A stretch of 63,812 nt of DNA, counting the filler, from Reticulomyxa filosa (lineage: Eukaryota > Protista > Foraminifera), in assembly GCA_000512085.1 (NCBI GenBank). It is 24 parts of 24 records of this genome, joined end to end, with 100 filler letters (N's around TTAATTAATTAA, not from the genome) between each part and the next. Parts side by side here need not be neighbours in the genome. Positions count along the whole stretch, not along the records: positions 51,588 to 59,450 come from ASPP01000045.1; 23 more parts are not named here. The stretch is one strand, 5' to 3'. Below are positions 2,504 to 59,450 of this stretch, in pieces. The notes under the pieces are model-generated. The model saw only the letters and a list, made by a program, of their open reading frames with translations. It had not been told where the DNA came from and ran no database searches. Each line of letters starts with the position of its first letter. Within the stretch, counting starts at the first letter, position 1. The position numbers and the translations under genes were made by a program.

Positions 2504-2850
2504 TCATTCACAACGACATAGCCGAAAGTTGTAATGCTCATGCATAGCCTTGGTGACATTGTACTTATTCATAGAAATGGGAAAGGGCATATCATCATGC
2601 CCTTTGAGAGAGCGCATTTCCAAGCATTGTTCTTTGCTGAACAAATCGAGTCGAATGATGGCAGGAATATTTCTGTTATTATGCGCAACGGTCTGCAGCC
2701 GTTTAAGTGTAAGATCATAATTCGCTCGCACCGCAAAGATAGGCTTGTGTAAGTTATTTTTTTTAAATTTCTCTTCGATCACGAGTTCAATATATTTCCG
2801 ATCGGAGCCTTCCCAATGCGCAGTCACTTCCAGCTCATCAACATCCCATT
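2504..2850 (-). CDS. Terminal exon of a hypothetical globular protein (5' partial)
   Basis: WDVDELEVTAHWEGSDRKY...NFRLCRCE* follows a long homopolymer that looks intronic; composition looks coding. Confidence 0.5.
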
Positions 2851-2856
2851 TTTTGC

Positions 2857-2898
<42 letters not shown>

Positions 2899-2960
2899 GT
2901 ATTAATGGTATAAAAATAATGTTAACAATGATAAGGAGATATCTGTACATATATACATTC

Positions 2961-3060
2961 NNNNNNNNNNNNNNNNNNNNNNNNNNNNNNNNNNNNNNNN
3001 NNNNTTAATTAATTAANNNNNNNNNNNNNNNNNNNNNNNNNNNNNNNNNNNNNNNNNNNN
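2961..3060. other. Artificial 100-nt contig linker (N-run, TTAATTAATTAA, N-run); first of 23
   Basis: The same linker starts at about 2961, 4352, 5764, 8658, 10895, 12427, 13717, 17802, 21413, 23619, 25996, 29131, 31273, 33007, 34488, 36020, 39885, 44512, 47337, 51488, 59451, 61375 and 62713. TTAATTAATTAA is palindromic and puts stops in all six frames. Confidence 0.98.
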
Positions 3061-3128
3061 AAAAAAAAAAAATGCATACCTTTGCAAACTCCTTAATGTT
3101 ATGTGGGTTAAATGTAATGGTAACACAG

Positions 3129-3302
3129 TTCCAACAGTTCCGCCAGAGGGACCTGACTATCACCATGGTTTGGTATACATCCGATTCTCCATTGAAGTAT
3201 AAAATTTGTGATGAAAGTGGCGAAGACCAGAACTGTGAATATTTTGGAGACTCAGTAGCTGATCACTTGAATTACATGGATTTGTACGAAGACTGCTCTT
3301 AA
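3129..3302 (+). CDS. Class-3 (fungal-type) lipase C-terminus, with a frame break at 3167/3168
   Basis: VPTVPPEGPDYHH in one frame and VWYTSD...C.ESGEDQNC...SVADHLNY in another match the Lipase_3 tail (VPxxPP..YxH...EVW...C...ED..C....S..DH..Y, with the catalytic His). Confidence 0.75.
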   Translation, partial: FQQFRQRDLTITMVWYTSDSPLKYKICDESGEDQNCEYFGDSVADHLNYMDLYEDCS

Positions 3303-5238
3303 AGCTAATTAATATGCAAATGTAATAAGTCCTCAAATGTGGGGAAAAAAGACATTTTTCTTTAAGGAGCTTGGGCATGATTGCTGATTGTTATTCATCC
3401 AATTGGATTTCTTCACAATGAACAAGAAACCCTAGAACATATTTACTTGCATATCCCAAGCCCAACTTAATTTCACCAAACAATGGAAAAAAAGAAATTA
3501 CAAGACACGCGCTCTTAAAAAATACCTATTATTGATCTTCATCAAAAGTTCGAAATGAGTACATAGATAGAAATTTTCTATAAGTTCACAAGAACAAAAT
3601 AGACAAATTGCTATTTAAATCCAAAATTTTGAAAGTATGAAAGCGTTGCGAAACTTAAAAAAAGGAGAAAAACAAAGCTGGCTTCATATTCGAAAAAAAG
3701 AAAATATTTTGCTTTTTGTGACGAGCTAATGAGTGAGTTACTTTCATATATAGTATTTTATTGCCAGTAACAGTGACGCACTTCTACTGCACACAAAATA
3801 GAAAGCAATAACGTACTGGTTACGTTAGCAATTCCAACGTGTTGCGTCACTTTTTTGTGGTTCTTTATCTACAGTTAGTGAACGATAAGCAAATTGATTT
3901 TATTTGTTGCCGTGTACTCTATAGTGAATTTCTAAAATATGATTTTCCAATTAAATAGCAATAATATATTACTAATAGACAAACTTGCAAGTAAAATTAG
4001 AAATACAAAAATACAAACATATAAAATGCTAACGAAAAAAGAGATAAAAAAAGTCCAAGTTTGCACAAGTAACAAATGACTATAACAATATACAAAAAAC
4101 AATTTAAAAAAAGCAAAATTGAAAAAAAGAAAACGTTGCGCACATTAAAATAACAAAACATAAAAAATATAATGTTATATTATTGCAAACATTTATATTG
4201 AAAATCATTTGGTGTCACAATTGAAAATGAATTATTGATATTGGATTGTACTAGGTGTAACAATATTTGTCAAAGTGTTTGTAATTCTGCTTTATCTTCT
4301 TTAAAAAGTTACCGGATGAAAGTTTATACACTTGGTATCTATTCATTAAAGNNNNNNNNNNNNNNNNNNNNNNNNNNNNNNNNNNNNNNNNNNNNTTAAT
4401 TAATTAANNNNNNNNNNNNNNNNNNNNNNNNNNNNNNNNNNNNNNNNNNNNTCATGGAGAAAATCGATTCTATTCATATAATGCCATTTAGGTATTGCAG
4501 TTTTTTTTGCAATTTACTGTATATTTAAAAAAAAGAATTTTGAAAAAATATTGATTTTCATGAATAAACTTATAATGTCCTAGTGGTTCATTTTAAAGGA
4601 ATATCTTTTTTGTTGTCAAATTTAACTATACTGATTTTTTAAAAAGTGTTTGTGAGAAATTTTTAAATTTCACTGGAATCATTATAGATTATTCTATTGT
4701 GGTTTCTCATTTTCCAATTTTAAATTGATATGTGCTAATTTTAACTTTTCACACTTATAATTGAATTATATTTTAAAAAAATGAGTTGTCAAAATTAAAA
4801 AATATGTCCTTTATATTAAAAAACTGGAGTCATTAGTATTTTCCCTCTGTCAAATGTAAAATTTTTTGACATCTTTTAAATCTATTGGTCTGTTTCAAAA
4901 TAAAAATGTCCAATCCTTTTCGACGATAGTTGATGCTTGCATTGATTCGTCTTTGTTTTGTCCTTTTTTTTAGTTTAGTCTCAGTGTGAGGTTGGTCGAG
5001 AAAGAAAATAACATTGATCGATTCTTGTTATTTTGGTACGATTATTGTTTGATGTTACAAAGAAATTGTGATAAAATATTGCAAAACTTATTTGTTTTGG
5101 CATAACTTTATTCATACAAAGAAAATCTTTGGAAATTGTAATTGCAAACACACAAATATATCAAAAGAGGTTGAGAAGAAATTAAAGAGAAATGTCATTC
5201 AAGGAATTTAAACAAATTTAGTGCTTCATTAAAAAAAA

Positions 5239-5894: not shown

Positions 5895-8612
5895 AACTTC
5901 TCCAGAAGTAAGCTGCTCTTGCAAGCCCTTGGTCTTGAATCGCAACTTTTCGTTTTCTTTGCGCAACTCGTCCATTTCGGCCAACAATTGGTCATTTTTG
6001 GCACGCAACTGCGCGATATTGTTTTTATATTGAGACAACGTGGGGAAGATGTCTTCTTCCAAAAACTCTTTGACCGACGCGTATCTTTCATGGTACGCTG
6101 CGCGCGTCAACGAAGTATTGGTGTCAGTGCTGCCATCACTCTTCGTTTCATCATTCGTCGCGTTATTCTCAGTCACGTTCTTTCAGCGATGTCTCCGATC
6201 GTGTTTTATTTGCATTCGGGGCAAGGCTTAAATTCGAGGGGGTCCTTGCAGGTGGCGGTGGAGCAACCCGTCCACCCGACTTTGCGTTCTTGTCATTGTT
6301 CGTGCCACTGTTGCTGTTACTATTGCTATTGCTATTGCTATTACTATTGCTATTGCTATTGCTATTGCTATTGATATTGATATTGTTATTGCTGCTGTTA
6401 TTATTCGTTGGCTTGGTGTTGTTTGTCATCTGACTTACCCGACGTTCTCTCTGCAAATTTTTTGATATTATATTACAACACACTGAAACATGTGTTATTT
6501 TTAAAAAAAATCTGCAAATTGGATTTGCAGTTCGGGTTGAGTTTAAAAGTTGCAGTTGTAATGAAACATATATACATATACATACATATATAAAAATATA
6601 TATATGTACATATATATATATGGATATGCATATATGCATATATATATATGTGTTCCCATAGAAGTAGGCATTAGAAACACGTACCTCAATAAACATGTCA
6701 TAAAGCTTATTTGGTTCCAACCTGAATGATCCCGATTCAGCGAGTGGTGAAGCGGGCTGTATGAGTCCACTCTCCGCATTGTTTGCCGTTGACTTCAAAT
6801 CTGAAAATTTACCTCGATGTTGCTCGCTTTATGTTCGTTTGTGCATACATACACACACATATACATATATAACATATATAACATATATATGCATATATAC
6901 ATATATAACATATATATGTATATATAAGCAGCGTGCTTTGATCCTTTAACCAAAGCAGCAAACACAAACGTAAATGGTCCAACAACTCAACTAGCAAAGA
7001 TCGCACACTCGCACTAAGTTGCTCTTGTTCGAACCAGTGGATGTCTTTTCCGGCAATTTTTGAGTTGAGCATTTGGCGCACACCAGATAGCCACTAAAGA
7101 CATGTCCCCAGTATGTGTTGTTAGGTGTATATGCATACGACATAGCATAGATGTACACGACACTATGCTACGTGGGGCACACAGCTAGGCAAAAACAAAA
7201 CAACTTCGTTACCAGTAGTAGCAGTGATGACGTCGCTCGATAAACGTGAACTTGGTTTGACATGTCTGTATCATGCAAATGGCAGAAAAGTCGTCTGGAA
7301 GAAACATGGTAGCGGCAATCAAGTCTTGGTTCGTTCGAACCCCCAATTCTTTGTAGTCATTTTTCTGTCGATTGCAAATCAAACATTAAGTTTATGGAGC
7401 GATAGGGACATTACAAATAATTTGTCTATCAAAAAAAAAAAAAAAAATCTACCTGTTTGAGCATCGCTTCCACCCATTTCTTTTTGGTTTCTTCGTCGTC
7501 GGTATAAACACAAAAAGACTCAACAGAAGAATGAATCTATGAATGATCCAGTCATAAAGTACCCATTTTTGTCATGTCCCCCCCCCCTCCTTACATTAAA
7601 TATATACATATATGCACCATATGTAGATAAATTAAAATAGCTGAAACTTCAAAGACAAAGCCAAAATCATTTTGCAGCTTCAAATGTGGCTCTTTGACCT
7701 CAAAGACCGAATCAATGGGCAGTGTATTTTGGTACTTCAAGTTTGTGGCGAATGAGGGCTGAGACCCATATACCAGACAATCCGTGAACAAAAAGAACAC
7801 GTAGTCTCGATCGTCCCTGCGTTCGATTTTGCACAGGTTGCCTTCCATTACAAATCTTCGTGCCGGTGCTAATAGCACAATCGATCCACCAAACCGCTCT
7901 TCCACTTCCTTCACTTGCTCGCGCCGAGTATTTTCTTTCATTCTCTCGTTCACAATGGTCGAGACCTTTTGAACACATCAGGTATATTTATTTGTGTATT
8001 TCTATCTTTATGTCATGCAAAGTGTAAAGCTCAACACTTTTAAGTGTGTATACATATGTATAAATGTTTATAAATGTATATAGTTTTGTTGCAAAGCTCA
8101 GTTCAAATGTACACAACTTCTTTAATAAGTTCCAAAGCTTCTTGCAACTGACTCAGGTCCGGATGATTCGGTTCTGTGTTTTTGATTATCTCTTCTAATA
8201 ATATTTTGTAGCGAGGGATTCTTTGAATTGGTAATATTAACATACTGCATTTTTTTTTTTTTTTTTTTGTTTTGTTTGTTTTGCTGCTCTTTATGCAAAA
8301 GCGACACAATTACAATAAAAAACGTATTACAAACCTTTCCAAAGTCAAATTGTCGCAATTTTTTCTCGCTTTTTGTGTGAACTCGGCAAACTATATAATA
8401 TATATATATATATATATATAAATATATGTATGCACATATACATATACACATATGTGTATATGCATATGTTAATTATGCCGTCCCCATGGCCACACGTAAT
8501 AAATCCAACTTTTTTTCGTTTTCTTGCCAAATACATTGGACAGACAGACATACAGCCGTGCTTTGTTGGAGCTTTCTTAATCGACCAGTAGCTTTCTCAT
8601 GGTTATTGCAGT
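5895..8612 (-). CDS. FGD/frabin-like RhoGEF: DH-PH-FYVE, then an Asn/Ser low-complexity region and coiled coil (multi-exon, partial)
   Basis: DH exons YCNNHEKATGRL, FAEFTQKARKNCDNLTLE, LILPIQRIPRYKILLEEIIKNT. PH exons RRFVMEGNLCK..YVFFLFTDCLVY, IHSSVESFCVYTDDEETKKKWVEAM. FYVE spliced across about 7310-6995: CMIQTCQTKFTFIERRHHCYY/CGYLVCAKCS...RVCDLC. Coiled coil at 5895-6176. Confidence 0.88.
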
Positions 8613-51482: not shown

Positions 51483-51724
51483 TATGTNNNNNNNNNNNNN
51501 NNNNNNNNNNNNNNNNNNNNNNNNNNNNNNNTTAATTAATTAANNNNNNNNNNNNNNNNNNNNNNNNNNNNNNNNNNNNNNNNNNNNATAATCATTTTGT
51601 TTTAGCAAAGGGAAGGGGAAGGGTAGGGTGGAAAAAAAAAAAGTAAATAAAATACATATACATATATGTAATATATGTATATGTGTTTTATTTAGTTTCA
51701 AAAAAAAAAAAAAAAAAGTGTTGC

Positions 51725-52248
51725 ACAAAACGTGTCGGCAAAAATGTGGCGTCATCGTATTTGACAGCCGTGGTATCGTTAACACATTTTTCAATGGTAT
51801 TGGAAATATCCCAAAGTGTGCTCCCATCGGACGCTTGCATGGAACGCAACAACTTATTCCCCACTACAAACAACATGTTAGACGTCGGATGGGCAATCAC
51901 TCGTGTGAAACTTCGCAGCAAAGATAAGTCCATTGGCGGCGCTGGGGATGGCCATTTGCTGAACCATTTCGTCTCCTTCACACTATCCGAGTCCTCGTAT
52001 GCTGCCACGTACGAAAAGTAGCTGTCCGATTTCGCAGAGTCTGCAAAGTCACCTGCGACTAACACATAATGCGCGTATTTCGAATAGCTCACACTGTTCG
52101 CGTTACTAAAGTTTGTTGTTAATTGCGGGATGGGAGACGGTGTTGCCAATGCAGAAAGCTCGGCTAAGCATTGTGAGGTATTCGTTTGGTGCCCTTTGCT
52201 ATATGCACAAAACAATAATTGCACGAAAAATAATAATATTGGTGTCAT
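51725..52248 (-). CDS. Secreted protein, possible beta-propeller (first exon; 3' partial)
   Basis: Signal-peptide-like MTPILLFFVQLLFCAYS; N-glycosylation sequons; PQQ-like ASDGSTLW. Confidence 0.6.
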
Positions 52249-54150
52249 CGAGGCTGCCGCTATAACATAAAAACTCTAGTTAAAACAAGTCCAGCAATTG
52301 AGCACCCCCTTTTTTGCTCTTACCAGAAACAACAAAAAGGGTCGAAAATATCAATAAACTAGATTAAACGTGAAATGCCACTTTGAAAGTACTTAATCAG
52401 ATAAAAACAGTATGGCTAGAAATAAACATTATTTGAAGACAATTTTTACATTTCAAAAAAATTTACTGCAAGTGATACAATTTTTGTAAACGATATTTTT
52501 GAGATTTAAAAATGTCTTGTACACAATTTCGAAAATACACATTACAAATTTCATCTGATAAAAAAGGTCGTTAAAAAGGGTCTAGTTTCATTTTTTTTAT
52601 TTTTTCATTTATCATCATATCTAATTATGTTTTTTCAACTGAACATACATGACGCTTACAAAAGCCACTCAACTGTCACAAATGCGGTCATGTTGTATGT
52701 ACATGAATTGCTTAGTAGTTACGACAAATTATATATTTTGTACAAAATCCATTAATTTGCCAACAACTGCGAAATTTTGCTTTTTTCACATTGAGAGCTA
52801 CATAAAAAAATTAACCTATTAATTACTCATGATGTGTTACACTTAGTTCTTTGCAAGCAGTTCAAAAGTTTTTCTTAGAAAATATTTCTACTAATTTAGG
52901 CTAACTGTATTTTGGTCACTAAAAATTGAAATCTTATTTTTCAATCTATTTTTTCAAACAAATTTCAGCTAACAAGTCATTCACTGTGACACTTGGGAAG
53001 TCGGACATTTGATTTTATAACTGTTCAAAGACTTTCAAATGGAAGATATGTTGTATGTCGATTACATATTTGCGTTTATTTGTACTATGCAGATTTTCTA
53101 TTTCATGCACTTTTTTGTATTACGGAAGAGTTGTATTAGCGCTACTGTGAGACAAACAAATCTTCATTGTAATTGCAAAGCATTGCAGGTGATCATATAA
53201 TATAATATTCAAACTGTTCAAACCAAAGAACAAAAAAAATTTTCATTTGCATTGATTTTATTAATTGTTTCAATTTTTTTTCGGCTTGCAGTGGAAACAG
53301 GTGTTTTCGTTCGAATAGCAAAAAAAAAACCAGAAACAAAAAAGTTTGTTCCATAAGCGGACTGGAAAAACACTACATACAGCTGCAAAAAAAAGTAGAA
53401 AACATAGAAACGTTAGGTTTGTTGTGCCAGATGAACATGAAACAACAACATTTTATAGGCTGAGATAATATCACAAATCACCAGTCTCGCAAATAAGCGC
53501 TTTAAAAATTATTGTTAAATGTATTGCAGGTTTCACGTGTTTATCAAAGTTCATATTTTAGTCTTGTTTTTCACCAACGTTACAATATTTGAAAAAGTGT
53601 CTCAAAATACTGTCAGTACGTCAAGGAACCAGTATCTTTGATGTACCGATGGAACAAGAGCGGTAGTAGCATCACTTTTCGTTTGTTGTTGCTGTAGTGT
53701 TTCAGTTTGAATTTCCAATAAAGTATAAATTGGGCCTTCTTATTGGAAGTGTTTTCATCATCTTCTTCCAATATTTGTACTTCGTCTAATGCTTGGTCTG
53801 ATGATGTGGATCCTATGGCTATCACCGTGGCTGCCGCTGTCGATGTGTCTGCTGTTTTTGCTGTCACTGTTGTAATACTTACGAACAATTTTCAAAAAAT
53901 CAGCCACTGCAATCACTTTTGTTTGACTTGTGCAAGATCACACATATATTTAAACATATATGTACGTATGTATGTATACATAATATATACGTTAAAAAAA
54001 AATACCTTTCGATTGTTAGTCAATCCAACTCGATCACTGACGACATAGTTACGAGTAGTTGAGTGGGTATGGGCCACCATAGTGATTTCTTTTTACGATC
54101 TTGCCACTTGCCAGATCATCGACGGTCGGTTCACGGTCATGTTGTCTACT

Positions 54151-54373
54151 TGTAGGGAAAGTCTCTATTATAAATCCCCAACTACTAACGGAACGGTGGG
54201 ACCCCCAGTGGGTTAAAACCCTCTTCTCAACACAACTCACTTTTCTCTCGTTGTACTTGTTTCTTTCATTTTAGTTGTTATTATTCTTTTTTAATTTACT
54301 TTCTTTTACTGAAGTTGTTCTTTTGGAACTAAGTTCCTTTCGTATTACACTTAGTCTTCTCACAAATCCCACA
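54151..54373 (-). mobile_element. LTR copy 3 (223 bp), no matching TSD
   Basis: Reverse complement of copies 1 and 2, end to end; flanks TACT and CTTG differ. Confidence 0.85.
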
Positions 54374-54769
54374 CTTGTGAGAATTATTTTCTTAGTTCAT
54401 TTTTGTTTTACTTAATTTGGTAAAAGTTACTTTCGTATTACACTTAAGCCGTACTCACTTTTCCTATAAATAAAAATGCAATATTTGTAAAGATTAATTT
54501 TAGATGTTTTTTTTGGGATCGATAGACTTTCAATTATTAAAACAATAAAATAAATGTTTGTAAAAACGAGTTGATGAGCATGGGAGAAGAGTTCAATCAT
54601 CTGCTAAGAGTTGTTTTGTTTTTGAAAGATTTCAAGCTTCAATAGCATGTTGGATTCGAAATCGAAGCAAAAGAAAAGAAAAAAAAGGACATTTTAAAAA
54701 GATATTTGGTTTTGTGAAATTGTTTTCAATCAAATTTCCTGTGACAAACAGTATTTTAAAAAAAAGAAT

Positions 54770-56833
54770 TCAGCATTCATTGCAAACTTTGCATTGCTGA
54801 ATCGGATAGCAATAATAGTAACAAGTATCAACAACGCGTCCATTAGGTCTCCCTTTTTTATGAAACATTTCAGACCTTGGTTTGGGATGCTTGGCAGTGC
54901 GAAAAATTGTTTCGCAAGTCTGTGCATCTGGACGATTAGAAGAAGCTGAAAATACTGCATAAAATTCAGAGATAGTGAACCATTTTATGTTTAAACCATT
55001 TTCAGTTATGCAAGATGTGATTTCCGTGATTGTGCCTTCGTGTTCACTGAGATAAGATGAAGACGAGCAATACTCCAGTTCGTTTTTATTTTTCTTTGTT
55101 TCTTTTTCTAGGTTATTGCAAAATACTTTCATGTCGTCCATAAACTTGTCAAGTGCAGAACAGGCTGCTTCTTTTTCTTCTTGCTCCCAACTATACTCAT
55201 TCTTGGATCCCCATTTTGAGCTGAGCTGTCTTTCAATTCGATTCTTCACCGACTGCCAACTCGTGGCCATGAAGCACAAACCCAGCGCATAGATATTATA
55301 CAATTTCTCACATTTTTCGTGTATTTCTTGCTTTGTCAGAGCCAATTTTTTTGTTTTTCAAATTGTAAAAACACTGTTCCATCAGTTTCTTTGCTATTTC
55401 ATCAGATAGGTCGCGTTTGTGTCCTTGACTATGTTGATGTCTTGCAAAAAGCGTGACGTCTTTAATATCCGTCTTTCCTTCTTCCCCTCCTTTTTTTTTT
55501 TGGGTATATTGTCTATGCCTTCTCGTCTGCAAGGAGAAGGGAGAAAGGAGAAGAAAAAAAAAAAACAAACTGAAAGAATTAAAAATAAATTCAATTAGTG
55601 AAATTGCTTTCTTGTCAATTATTCCCAATGCACCTTCACATCCGTCAAACAATTCTCGCAGTGTCTTAAATTTTGTCTCCATATTTCCTAAAAAGGTGAT
55701 ATAATAACAATAATCAAATTAATTCGGACCAAAGAACAAGTGTGTTTCCCCCCCTCCACTTTCTCCTTTTTTTTTTTTTAACGTATAATGAGATTATCCA
55801 AAATACTGAAGTCTTCTAAGCCAGGCTTTTGTTTGTAATGACTGATGTCTTTTGGATATACCAAACATTCGGATTGGTTTTGCAGATAAGGCTCAATGAT
55901 GACCACAGAATTCACACCGTCATGCATCGATTGTATGTTTTGTATCATCGTTTTGAAAAATTGTCGAATGATATCCAATGCAAGAATTGGGGTATCGAGA
56001 TCGGCTTGCAATTGATGAAATAAACTAACACAAATGATTTCCAAAGAGTTATTGGAAAGATGGTGCTTACCGTTCATTACAACACGTTGCCACACTTTCA
56101 AAAACAACACTGCCAATCGAGTGTTTTTTCCAACCAGACTCTCTCTCATGTAATATACACGTAGCAATGATAGCGACGCTGACATGTTCTTTTCTAAAAA
56201 GCTTTTCCATTGTTTTTGCTTTGCCATATTTGTAATATGTCTTTTATGTGTCGGTGCTTCCTCGATCAAATCATTGGCAGTACTTTGCAATTGCTCCATT
56301 GAAAATGGATACACATGAACATTGCTTTGGGTGTAATGAAATTCACAATATTGTCTTTTCGAAAAAGTCCATGCTATTGCAATATGATATTCCAATCCTT
56401 TCCAATTGATTTTCAGCGAAAATTTTGAATGCTTTAATACCTTTATTTTATCTGTACACAGTTCTTTCTTTATTTTATCAATCGATTGCTTAACCCATTT
56501 GAGAATACCAACATGTTGCTTTTGAAGCGAATCAATGTTTTGACGAGCTACATACTTTTCTTTCAAATGATATAAGAATACTAAATATCCACAAGATAAA
56601 TTGGGAATTACAAGTTGCTTTTGCACACACCCAGATAGTGTCACTCCGTAAATACGTGAAAATAAACAATTTTTGTCGTAATATGCCGTTTCTTTGTGCT
56701 TGTCTAATAGGCTATTCACAAAGTCATTGGCCTTTTCATAGTACAAAGAAACAGCTTCAGATGAGTTTAGATCTTGGATCTTCGCTTCCAATAATTTCTG
56801 AGATTCCAAGTCATTCTGCTTTTCTTCTGTCAT
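54770..56833 (-). CDS. OAS/CD-NTase-fold (Pol-beta superfamily) pseudo-nucleotidyltransferase with an unknown C-terminal domain
   Basis: 351-codon exon with an OAS-like motif order (see findings). In-frame GT-AG intron 55782-55688 joins it to ORF 55682. A one-base break in the run at 55346-55352 joins ORF 55345. Confidence 0.7.
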
Positions 56834-58609
56834 CTTTAAATCATTAAATGCGATAATGTAGAAACCGCTCTAGGTTTTTTTTTAAAACTACCGTGGCAGA
56901 ATACTCCGGGATTTTTCAACAAAATTGTGCCGTTTTGTTTGAAAGATGCATAATCTCTCGTTAAAAAGGCTTTTTGGAAACAAAATAAATCCCAAACGAT
57001 GTGCTAGTTTGTAAATTAACAGAAAAAAACGAAATCTTCAATTTATATTGAACAAAAACTATACAATCAACAACCAAAAAAAATGACTCCAAACTCGTCA
57101 TTTCAAAATTTTTAATGAAAAGAAAAAAAAAATGGAACTAAGTCCCCCACTTATGACATGTTATTATGATCAATAACTTGAAAATTTTTTTTAAATCAAT
57201 AACACAATAACTAGCTTACTTGATGGCCACTGGATTAAAAAGAAACAATTTTTTATTTATATAGCAAAACTGGATCATTTTTAAAAAACAGGTTTAAAAA
57301 ATTTAAAAAATGACTAAAAATTGTTGATGAAAAATTTGCGTATTTGCGCTGTTATATTTTGTTTTATGATTATTTTAAAGCATTTAATGATTTAAACATC
57401 CTTTTTTCTTTGCAAATACTACTTAAGCAAAGAAGAGTCCTTTTGAACACTTGAGTTATCAAAAAAAACAAAAAAGAAGGTGAAAAAATTGTCCTCTGTA
57501 ATTTTATAATTGTGATTGAAGTTGTCAAAGGCCACTGGTTGTATACTTTTCAAATAGAAATGCTATCACTTGTTTCTTTTTTAAACTTATGTTTTGTCAA
57601 CAGACATTGTTAATATTGTTGTGTTATTTTTGAAAAACATGTTCAAAAAATAAATCACAATTTTAATTATTACGAATATCAAATATTATTCCTTTTATTG
57701 TATTTTTACAAAAAATGTTGCTCTTATAATAATTTTTTTAATTTAATGCATACGTCATCTAATAAAAAAGGAGGAAAAAAGTTCCTTTTTGAAAATTGTT
57801 GATCATTGTTGAATGTCCATATTGAGTCACATTTTAATTTATTCTTTGATATAACTTTTGTTTGATAAAATAAATCAATAACACAATAACTGATTTATTT
57901 GTTACTTTTTTTTATTAAAAAATCGATTTGTAATTTGACATGGTTATTGAAATTATATAGATTGTTGTGAAACATTTGACGGATTGATTGAAAGAACAAA
58001 AACAAAAAGAAAAACAAGAGCATTGTAATGATATGAAGAGATTAAAAAGATTGGCTGACATGTTGGTGTCAAACAACATATTGTTGCGAAAGAAATGCTA
58101 TAAGGTTATCCAATAGTGCTACAAAGACTCAAGTCAAGTAAAAGGAACAGGTAAAAGAATTGGAGCTAGTAGGAATAATAATGAAAAGCTATTCTCAATT
58201 TGTTGCACCAGTAGTATTTACGCATGTGCATCGACTATCGAGAATTAAACCAAGCAACTATACGTGACTTGAAACAGAATATTGTAATCTAATGGATCGC
58301 TAAAAAAAAATATATACTTGATCATCATCGTATTTCGAAATCGTCGAAGAATTAACTAACTTCAAACAAACAAGAATCTTCAAGAAAAAGTCCGAAAATT
58401 TTTTTAACTAGTGATAAATTTTTTTTTTATAGTAGTTTGATTTTGTGATATTGTGACTGCAGTATCTAGTTGTTCTGTGATTGTCTTCCTTCAAAATAAA
58501 ACTTTTTTTCAAAAGTTTATCTCGATAATGAAGGATGTTTAAATTATTTATTATTTATTTTTTTCAATAGGCTATACTGCAAGCTATGTTGAGACAAAAT
58601 ACACCACAT

Positions 58610-59450
58610 AGAATTGGGTCAAGAATCCAATCTAATGGTAAGGCAGACATGTTAACTACACTTCCGAACATGTCTGCGGAAATTCACAAAGATGCAATTG
58701 ACATTGCAGCACTCAAACATGAAAGAATGCGATCATGTAAAGTATTTTGGATTGTTTCTTGATTCTCACATGACTTATTCCAAGCATGTTAATTAAATCT
58801 ATGGCAAAGCAGCAAGGAAAATTAGATATTTGACATAATTATGTTCATACAAAGGTATTAGACCAAGTTTATCAATATATAATATATTATACAAGACCAT
58901 CATTCGTCAACATTTTGGAATGATGCAGCGGACACACATAAGAGACGATTAGAAAGAATACAAAGAATTGCAATGTGTAGAATTCTTGGTGTAATGAACC
59001 AGACTGCTTATGGAACAATTAATGTTATTTCCAAACTTCATCCTCTTGAATTACGACGAAGACAAGAAGAGGTGGAGTTGTATCACAAATGTGTCAGATG
59101 GTCAGGTCGATTCAATGTGTTGGCATACAAGATTTGAAATGAATCAAGACCAAAGACTAATTTAAATTATATATCATTGATTGGTAAATTATCGACATTA
59201 TACTGTGGATGCATCAATGAAGCTGATGCTGGAATGCCGAAAGTTGAACCAGATTCACATACAATACCAAATATTCCACCAATGCAAATTTCAATGATGC
59301 CACAACCAAATAAATCACCATTTGCGATCTTCAATGAACCAACATCAGATGAAATTTTGTCGTCATTGGACTTCGATTGCAATGTGATATTTTGTAATGG
59401 AAGTAAGTTCCCGAATCCTGGAATTGGAGGAGCAGGACTTGTCATTCAGG
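58610..59450 (+). mobile_element. LINE relic: RT C-terminus to RNase H start
   Basis: KYFG..LDSHMTYSKHV..YGKAARKL..LYKTIIR..LERIQRIA..ILG..PLELRR; CNVIFCNGS..NPGIGGAG (RNase H first motif, DGS replaced by NGS). Confidence 0.85.

Follow-up and report, generated by a model that had tools for sequence, protein, structure and literature searches.

The loss of catalytic residues from a nucleotidyltransferase (NTase) fold that is otherwise retained is a feature of several relatives of the 2'-5' oligoadenylate synthetases (OAS). Human OASL (PDB 4xq7), for example, has an OAS fold without the catalytic residues and a non-catalytic C-terminal extension formed by two ubiquitin-like domains, and it binds double-stranded RNA and works without the synthesis of 2'-5'-linked oligoadenylates. 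Domain I of OAS2 and domains I and II of OAS3 (9h1z, 4s3n) are duplicated OAS units without the DxD...D residues, which are fused to an active unit and have RNA-binding or regulatory roles. The DZF domains of NF45/NF90 (4at7-4atb) and the MiD49/MiD51 proteins are NTase-fold pseudoenzymes that lack the catalytic acidic residues and serve as dimerisation or nucleotide-binding scaffolds; their genes are conserved in animals, present in few copies and combined with other partner domains. The same fold is found in the bacterial cGAS/DncV-like NTases (CD-NTases; CdnC, DncV, CdnB/D/E/G) of the cyclic oligonucleotide-based antiphage signalling systems (CBASS). The window analysed here is a stretch of 63,812 nucleotides (filler included) from the foraminiferan Reticulomyxa filosa (assembly GCA_000512085.1), in which positions 51588-59450 represent one whole contig of 7863 bases (ASPP01000045.1). 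By analogy with the proteins listed above, the gene RFI_00040 on the minus strand of this contig probably encodes a pseudoenzyme of the OAS superfamily, one of a clade of paralogs that would have been maintained as sensors, adaptors or regulators.

In a survey of the CD-NTases in EukProt (Culbertson and Levin 2023, PMC10732462), OAS-like proteins were found in 8 of the 12 eukaryotic supergroups; they are thought to be the most widespread eukaryotic CD-NTases, and may date back to the last eukaryotic common ancestor. The trees and alignments of that survey include five R. filosa sequences, P025644 (P0022 in the present family), P024262 (P0027), P021013, P007837 and P006249, all of the GGS/DxD/D type, and P0022 and P0027 group there with sequences from algae, dinoflagellates and stramenopiles. 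The species table of the survey has a positive mark for EP00480 in a column that is probably that of OAS. In its hmmscan table, EP00480_P006249 has only a sub-threshold match to NTP_transf_2 (E 0.094), and the rows of P007837 and P021013 hold weak matches to unrelated families. The EukProt identifier of RFI_00040, P039924, and those of the clade-mates checked are absent from the sequence files of the survey, and literature combining Reticulomyxa with oligoadenylate or cGAS yielded nothing direct. It appears, then, that OAS-superfamily genes of R. filosa are already known, and that the expanded degenerate clade is not described in the literature searched. An earlier interpretation of the DNA, made without database searches (the sequence-only reading), had proposed an enzymatically dead OAS-fold protein that may be a nucleic-acid sensor or adaptor of an undescribed innate immune pathway. 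The word "undescribed" is too strong, given that the intact R. filosa paralogs figure in the survey (PMC10732462). The dead clade is absent from that dataset.

The protein annotated at the locus (RFI_00040; P0001, 607 amino acids, aa) was recovered at 100% identity in a word-index protein search. The minus-strand open reading frame (ORF) at 55778..56833 starts with ATG and encodes 351 aa, and it contains, at the numbering given by the sequence-only reading, the motifs L66-S67-G68-C69-V-Q-K, S80-C81-G82-Y83-LVFL and Y149-H150-IAIAW, together with SASLSLLRVYYM, RLAVLFLKVWQ, LSNNSLEIICV and SILD. The rhizarian origin suggested in the same reading agrees with the foraminiferan source.

The state of the active site was established from an alignment of the widened family, including the more distant R. 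filosa paralogs (alignment A2), and from a table of sites covering 40-odd family members. The paralogs RFI_14454 (P0022) and RFI_15844 (P0027) read YGVVLGGSLQK / DGD(L/I) / (F/Y)D, whereas the window reads YGVTLSGCVQK / CGYL / YH in the same columns. The serine is thus replaced by C69, within S67-G68-C69 in place of G-G-S, and the three aspartates by C81, Y83 and H150. The two types share the motifs YGVxLxGxxQK, LVFL, ...TY/TF, FLKxW, LExxC and (I/L)xDN, and differ in having GGS / D(G/E)D / D in the intact paralogs and SGC / CGY / H in RFI_00040 and its closest relatives. That the GS serine and each of the three metal-binding aspartates have been lost can be followed column for column against GGS/DGD/D proteins of the same genome, in which the active (DxD) paralogs that the sequence-only reading had recommended looking for do exist. 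In the partial sequence P0037, GGS and DGD are kept, and the column of the third aspartate has no D; the published alignment of the intact paralogs with dinoflagellate and copepod OAS-like proteins shows their D in that column (PMC10732462 supplement). The acidic set required in an active Pol-beta NTase (hG[GS], [DE]x[DE] on beta2 and a third [DE] on beta5) is missing from RFI_00040, which is predicted from these residues to be incapable of canonical two-metal nucleotidyl transfer, and hence of making 2'-5' oligoadenylate in response to double-stranded RNA. The lysines of 'VQK' ('GxxQK') and 'FLKVW' ('FLKxW') are kept, and the second aligns to the K of OAS2 'IKHW'/'VKHW'. The OAS1 equivalents of these lysines touch the nucleotide phosphates.

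These replacements are common to a large group of genes. Some 22 family members carry SGC/CGY/H, with the variants SGH/YGY/H in P0015 and SGC/CGN/H in P0021. In a maximum-likelihood tree of 23 core sequences, which is rooted at the midpoint only and has four unstable long-branch rows, all the proteins of the SGC/CGY/H type form a single clade (support 100/100, stem 0.88), and every member in which any of the acidic residues is kept lies elsewhere in the tree. The pairwise ratio of nonsynonymous to synonymous substitution rates (dN/dS) in exon 1, calculated by the Nei-Gojobori method from the assembly DNA of seven paralogs, is 0.13-0.45, and mostly 0.2-0.3, with a dS of about 1-1.4, so close to saturation that the ratios are approximate, yet far from neutral. 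Values of about 0.2-0.3 are those of a sequence that is not evolving neutrally; neutral evolution would have told against the sequence-only reading. On the evidence of the tree and of these ratios, the clade descends from a single ancestor that was already without the triad, and has been held under purifying selection ever since.

This selection is unevenly distributed along the protein. The dN is lowest, at 0.20, in the NTase sheet (residues 60-165; dN/dS 0.21), followed by the C-lobe, with 0.29, and the tail (306-350), with 0.71, and 26 of the 33 invariant columns are found in residues 60-165 (Fisher, odds ratio 11, p 1.7e-09). No other part of the protein is thus as well preserved as the region of the former active site, a pattern which is consistent with a retained binding pocket and leaves room for a repurposed Cys/His site. 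In such a site, Cys69, Cys81 and His150, with Tyr83 and possibly Cys163, would bind a thiophilic metal such as Zn or Fe, or form a Cys-His catalytic or redox-sensing centre, so that the NTase fold would acquire a new chemistry or a structural metal site, and it would account for replacement residues that are invariant, or nearly so, over about 22 paralogs of 45-75% identity. The four positions of C69, C81, Y83 and H150 adjoin in OAS1 and the Pol-beta NTases, and would be mutually adjacent here too, although this geometry is read from the fold. The beta-sheet core, however, is usually the most conserved part of an NTase fold in any case, and two members, P0015 (His and Tyr where the others have Cys69 and Cys81) and P0021 (Asn in place of Tyr83), indicate that the cluster is not strictly required. 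We know of no NTase-fold protein with a Cys/His site of this type, and the repurposing of the site is considered rather unlikely, at roughly one chance in eight.

The triad has also been lost in other ways outside the SGC/CGY/H clade, where P0028, P0030, P0031, P0034 and P0041 show the patterns GGN/IGD/N, GGC/NSA/N, SGD/EQR/A, GDG/DAS/E and GGS/NVN/K. Degeneration has therefore taken place several times in the OAS-like family of R. filosa.

The kinship with OAS is most evident when the family is searched as a whole. An hmmsearch of all PDB sequences with the profile of alignment A2 gave a sole significant match, human OAS2 (E 2.8e-06), and the aligned stretches lie in the N-lobe and the C-lobe of both OAS2 domains, covering 'GGS...SD(A/G)(D/T)LV(V/L)F' and 'LI(K/R)L(I/V)KHW...(Y)ALELLT(V/I)YAWE'. 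The segments aligned to OAS2 by the profile are the same as those that the sequence-only reading had matched by eye to the OAS motifs. A profile of the dead clade also detects the intact paralog P0022 (RFI_14454), with E 5.6e-57. A paralog profile run with HMMER against 1.84 billion cluster representatives recovered 28 proteins, nearly all of which are from R. filosa; the remainder consists of a single sequence from Tara Oceans and three short metagenome fragments from JGI. The Tara Oceans protein, P0036 (675 aa; GGS/NGD/D), is the only full-length relative from outside Reticulomyxa, and is encoded by an intronless gene at L001 8001-10028, on a scaffold of 18,962 nt. This contig comes from a marine metagenome, has 22% GC and is dense in short ORFs without Pfam matches, and its source may be a protist or a giant virus.

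Searches with single sequences were less productive. The window protein had no match to PDB in a phmmer search, and its weak DosC_2nd and ELF matches were dismissed as noise. Neither OAS1_C (PF10421) nor NTP_transf_2 of Pfam matched the window protein or any of the 18 family members scanned, even at E <=1. Weak, sub-threshold matches to CBASS oligonucleotide cyclases were found in the N-lobe of P0022 and P0027 (NCBIfam E 7.2e-06; PADLOC E 5e-04 to 6e-03), with 25.3 bits for P0022 against a cutoff of 200, and the window protein matched none of the CBASS cyclase models of NCBIfam and PADLOC. Surveys based on hidden Markov models would overlook derived clades such as SGC/CGY/H.

The fold was predicted from the exon-1 ORF with AlphaFold2, in a model built on 12 paralogs (predicted template modelling score 0.75; mean predicted local distance difference test, pLDDT, 73.5). 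For most of residues 1-305 the pLDDT exceeds 70, while the final 46 residues are disordered. The model comprises a long N-terminal helix pair (helix 8-50), strands at 61-66, 82-89 and 130-156, and five helices between 179 and 304, and the strands bearing C69, C81/Y83 and H150 have block pLDDT values of 78-91. The best VIA match among 48,161 PDB representatives is porcine OAS1 (4rwn_A, Z 16.1, root-mean-square deviation 4.1, 277 residues), followed by yeast poly(A) polymerase (PAP; 14.5), NF45 (14.2), Utp22 (14.1), Nrap (13.8), OAS2 (13.7) and DncV (13.1), with many CD-NTases and terminal uridylyltransferases at Z 11-13, and MiD49 at 11.1. Foldseek returned CdnC (6u7b, the first match), OAS1, OAS2 and NF90/45 at E about 1e-4. 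In the ESM Atlas, the structure search found OAS1_C clusters at a template modelling score of 0.61-0.63, and the feature search placed the protein beside clusters of OAS1_C/NTP_transf_2/SMODS (0.96), DZF (0.94) and CBASS cyclases (0.92). The AlphaFold2 and Foldseek runs favour the OAS-type fold that had been proposed from the motifs, in that all the top matches are NTase, OAS, PAP, DZF or CD-NTase proteins, and a two-lobed Pol-beta NTase fold with a helical lobe of the PAP/OAS1 type may be taken as established for RFI_00040.

The closeness of NF45, Utp22, Nrap and PAP to OAS1 in these rankings, and the DZF clusters in the feature search, raise the question of whether RFI_00040 might be a housekeeping NTase-fold scaffold (a diverged DZF protein of the NF45/NF90/ZFR type, Nrap/Utp22 or a non-canonical poly(A) polymerase) rather than a relative of OAS. 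This is very improbable. The significant profile match in PDB was to OAS2 alone, the Pfam models DZF_N, DZF_C, PAP and Nrap had no match in the 18 members, and a lineage-restricted group of more than 20 copies, with only 28 representatives among the 1.84 billion proteins, is unlike a conserved housekeeping orthologue. The closest intact paralogs, furthermore, have been placed in published CD-NTase trees (PMC10732462), and have the weak CBASS cyclase matches cited above. The overall size of about 660 aa, with a core of about 370 aa, is also unlike that of Utp22 or Nrap, which exceed 1000 aa. Orthology to NF45/ZFR or Nrap/Utp22, which the sequence-only reading had named as one of its possible refutations, therefore finds no support: the clade, of about 20 copies, is restricted to one lineage, and its profile matches only OAS2.

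The gene spans about 2.06 kb and contains a single NTase module. Its exons were searched, translated and aligned singly, rather than as a joined spliced protein. Exon 1 (55783..56833, minus strand), as defined by the ORF, the model and the alignments, has 350 codons and one further base, with which a split Arg codon begins. It accounts for the helices at the N-terminus, the beta-sheet lobe of the NTase and the greater part of the helical, OAS1_C-like lobe. Intron 1 (55688..55782, minus strand) is a GT...AG intron of 95 nt in phase 1, with the donor C/GTTAA and the acceptor TTTTTAG/GA (the slash marks the splice junction), and its splice sites were placed from comparative DNA alone. Between the window and 2 paralog loci, codon-level conservation extends to GAT AAC CTC ATT ATA C/GTTAA, is lost, and is regained at TTTYAG/GAAATAT. 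Among the paralog loci, coding conservation reaches GATAACCTCATTATAC/GTTAA before the intron, and the first open frame of every paralog terminates in ...DN(L)x(I)R-stop. The end of exon 1 is therefore placed at 55783, and the beginning of exon 2 at 55687. The intronless Tara relative P0036 spans the site of intron 1 with IADPITEQNIARKF / 'IADPITEQNIARKFNEW', which matches both the window reading 'ILDNLII/RNMETKFKTL' and the OAS motif 'ILDPxxPxxN' to which the sequence-only reading had drawn attention. That reading was right in taking the gene to contain an intron, since the GT-AG intron at 55782..55688 is conserved among the paralogs; its 'SILD' residues are also present, but coding runs on through 'SILDNLII' to the donor at 55782. 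The public model of RFI_00040 uses a donor GT 27 nt upstream of the conserved one, which drops 'SILDNLII' (window 55688-55810), and also masks a break in the frame further downstream with an unsupported, invented intron.

The exon 2 region (55346..55687, minus strand) was defined by translation, by blastp to P0006 and P0020, by the collinearity of tblastn matches and by the open frames of the paralogs. It encodes the last helix of the OAS core (RNMETKFKTLRELFDGCEGAL...), a T-rich stretch and the first part of a helical region with 'EQCFYNLKNKK', and stops at a run of A7. Because the last core helix belongs to exon 2, the tail of the exon-1 model is disordered. The T-rich, low-complexity stretch (FFFFLLLSPFSLQ...; 55540-55590, minus strand) coincides with an intron in the paralogs at L006 and L007. 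In the window, no combination of GT and AG tried for a short in-frame intron at about 55540-55590 keeps the frame, and the stretch may be translated, mis-assembled or unconventionally spliced.

At the A7 homopolymer (55346..55352, minus strand) the frame shifts by one base in comparison with the paralogs. Two open frames, at 55311-55685 and 54773-55345, run collinearly with P0006 330-427 and 429-504, and lie in different frames of the window, whereas at the paralog loci L006 and L007 one frame continues across this region; when one A is removed from the run, the window reads 'NLKNKKLALTKQE', with the same length as P0006 at this point. The break may have arisen in the assembly or be a true frameshift of the gene. 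The sequence-only reading had described the gene as intact, which is true of exon 1 but not of the coding part downstream, broken by one base at A7 55346-55352.

The break could also signal that this copy is a pseudogene, or that the whole family is decaying, as might be expected of an unexpressed set of numerous duplicates in a repeat-rich genome. Other copies are disturbed as well, with a change of frame in the middle of the third paralog at L005 and a frame with one stop in P0003; a retroelement fragment lies 1.8 kb upstream of RFI_00040, and no RNA run is listed for R. filosa. Decay of this type nevertheless seems unlikely, given that the 350 codons of exon 1 are open, with a conserved start and end, that dN/dS against the paralogs is well below neutrality, and that the terminal domain beyond the break is open over 191 codons and remains 46-53% identical to the paralogs. 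The break itself falls within a homopolymer, and homopolymers are frequent sites of assembly error.

The last coding part (54770..55345, minus strand), with its 191 codons (stop included), comprises a terminal domain preceded by an acidic/Ser linker and, before that, by a helical region of the form 'LYxxYxLxLCF...RIER', and the identity of 46-53% refers to P0020, L005 4183-4443 and L007 10415-10705. The terminal domain is a conserved, Cys-rich region of about 95 aa, WFTISEFY...TCETIFRTAKHP...MFHKK...GRV...CYPIQQCKVCNEC, which runs to the end of the gene at 54770. This C-terminal extension had no match in a Pfam scan and no useful match in the ESM Atlas (features <0.9, low recognition), and its AlphaFold2 model is too poor for a fold search (pLDDT 43.5); a winged helix, suggested by its beta-beta-alpha-alpha-beta-beta pattern, would be no more than a guess. 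A word-index search with a length filter also returned nothing for the extension, whose relatives lie in longer models beyond that filter. The extension has no significant similarity to the tails of the active-like paralogs, and an extension common to both types was rejected for this reason.

The protein P0020 (ETO33391.1, 504 aa), which bears the name 'Casein kinase II regulatory subunit' at NCBI, aligns to the RFI_00040 family almost from end to end. Its residues ~1-146 represent the C-lobe and the tail of the core (57% identical to the window ORF, of which 39% is covered), residues 169-255 the exon-2 region, and residues 254-503 the C-terminal extension (HMM E 1.5e-80), so that the name looks like an annotation error, or the product of a chimeric model.

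Taken with the known pseudoenzymes of this fold, these features suggest, as the most likely mode of action, one resembling that of OASL, the inactive domains of OAS2/OAS3, DZF and MiD51. The two-lobed architecture of OAS would have been kept, with catalysis lost through C69, C81, Y83 and H150, and a nucleic acid or nucleotide ligand might be bound in the retained cleft, where the kept lysines lie. A signal, or a regulatory effect, could then be transmitted through the C-terminal extension or through catalytically intact paralogs (RFI_14454, RFI_15844 and others). Ligand binding, partnership with active paralogs and a role in immunity are all inferred by analogy with the systems described at the outset.

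The resemblance to OASL, which is among the Foldseek matches of the RFI_00040 model (4xq7, rank 49), lies in the combination of an OAS fold without catalytic residues and a non-catalytic extension. The extension of RFI_00040, however, is an unrelated helical region followed by the Cys-rich domain rather than two ubiquitin-like domains, the SGC/CGY/H clade has about 20 or more copies, in contrast with one or two OASL genes per genome, and the triad replacements differ from those of OASL and are invariant (Cys/Cys/Tyr/His) within the clade, P0015 and P0021 aside. The inactive domains of OAS2 and OAS3 are likewise comparable, and both 4s3n and 9h1z are structural matches of the model, but their dead and active units are fused, whereas those of R. 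filosa are encoded by separate genes, so any cooperation between the two would occur in trans. No relation to the DZF and MiD proteins was detected at the level of the sequence, either in Pfam or in the PDB profile search. The CBASS CD-NTases share the fold, and RFI_00040 differs from them in being eukaryotic and intron-containing, and in having neither an operon or effector partner nor catalytic residues.

A number of observations weigh against a maintained pseudoenzyme. With no RNA run listed for the species, RFI_00040 has no transcript support, and its ligand, partner and immune context are drawn from analogy. The window protein matches no Pfam, NCBIfam or PADLOC model, and the structural Z gap between OAS and PAP, DZF or Utp22 is small (16.1 vs 14.1-14.5). 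The near-saturation of dS and the fold-derived geometry of the C69/C81/Y83/H150 cluster count in the same direction, and the frame break in the C-terminal extension means that this particular copy may have no function, even within a clade that has one.

There is also some possibility, though a minor one, that the SGC/CGY/H clade is not simply dead, and that its members either possess a new metal or redox centre or act as receptors for a nucleotide signal made by the intact paralogs. If they were receptors, a duplicated synthase would have become the sensor of its own product, in a self-contained form of OAS-type signalling, within a protist for which no RNase L is known.

Under the preferred interpretation, that of a maintained pseudoenzyme, a single genome offers a natural contrast between a few paralogs with an intact triad and a large clade with Cys/Cys/Tyr/His and a C-terminal module of its own. 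This arrangement parallels the split of vertebrate OAS1 from OASL and OAS3 domain I, and is of independent origin, which suggests that pseudoenzymes derived from OAS duplicates are a recurrent design. It also provides concrete proteins for tests of the binding of RNA, nucleotides and metals.

The surroundings of the gene were compared among loci. Similarity between the window and six paralog loci is confined to 54775-56809, in both nucleotide and translated comparisons, with the exception of the retroelement fragment. The possibility that the family is a repeat, or a passenger of a transposon, was rejected, given that the flanks are not common to the loci and that the retroelement fragment is differently arranged. 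This fragment (58677-59414, plus strand) contains short ORFs without a Pfam match, and matches L007 2521-3261, where it lies directly 3' of an RVT_1 gene. Some members of the clade are clustered, with three paralogs in mixed orientation on one 9.6-kb contig (L005, ASPP01004733.1), at 27-1493, 2517-3709 and 6323-7543, and P0021 and P0044 lie together on a contig of 4.6 kb. The contig of RFI_00040 also bears, at 51688-52248 on the minus strand, an ORF of 186 aa without a Pfam match, which has a hydrophobic N-terminus resembling a signal peptide.

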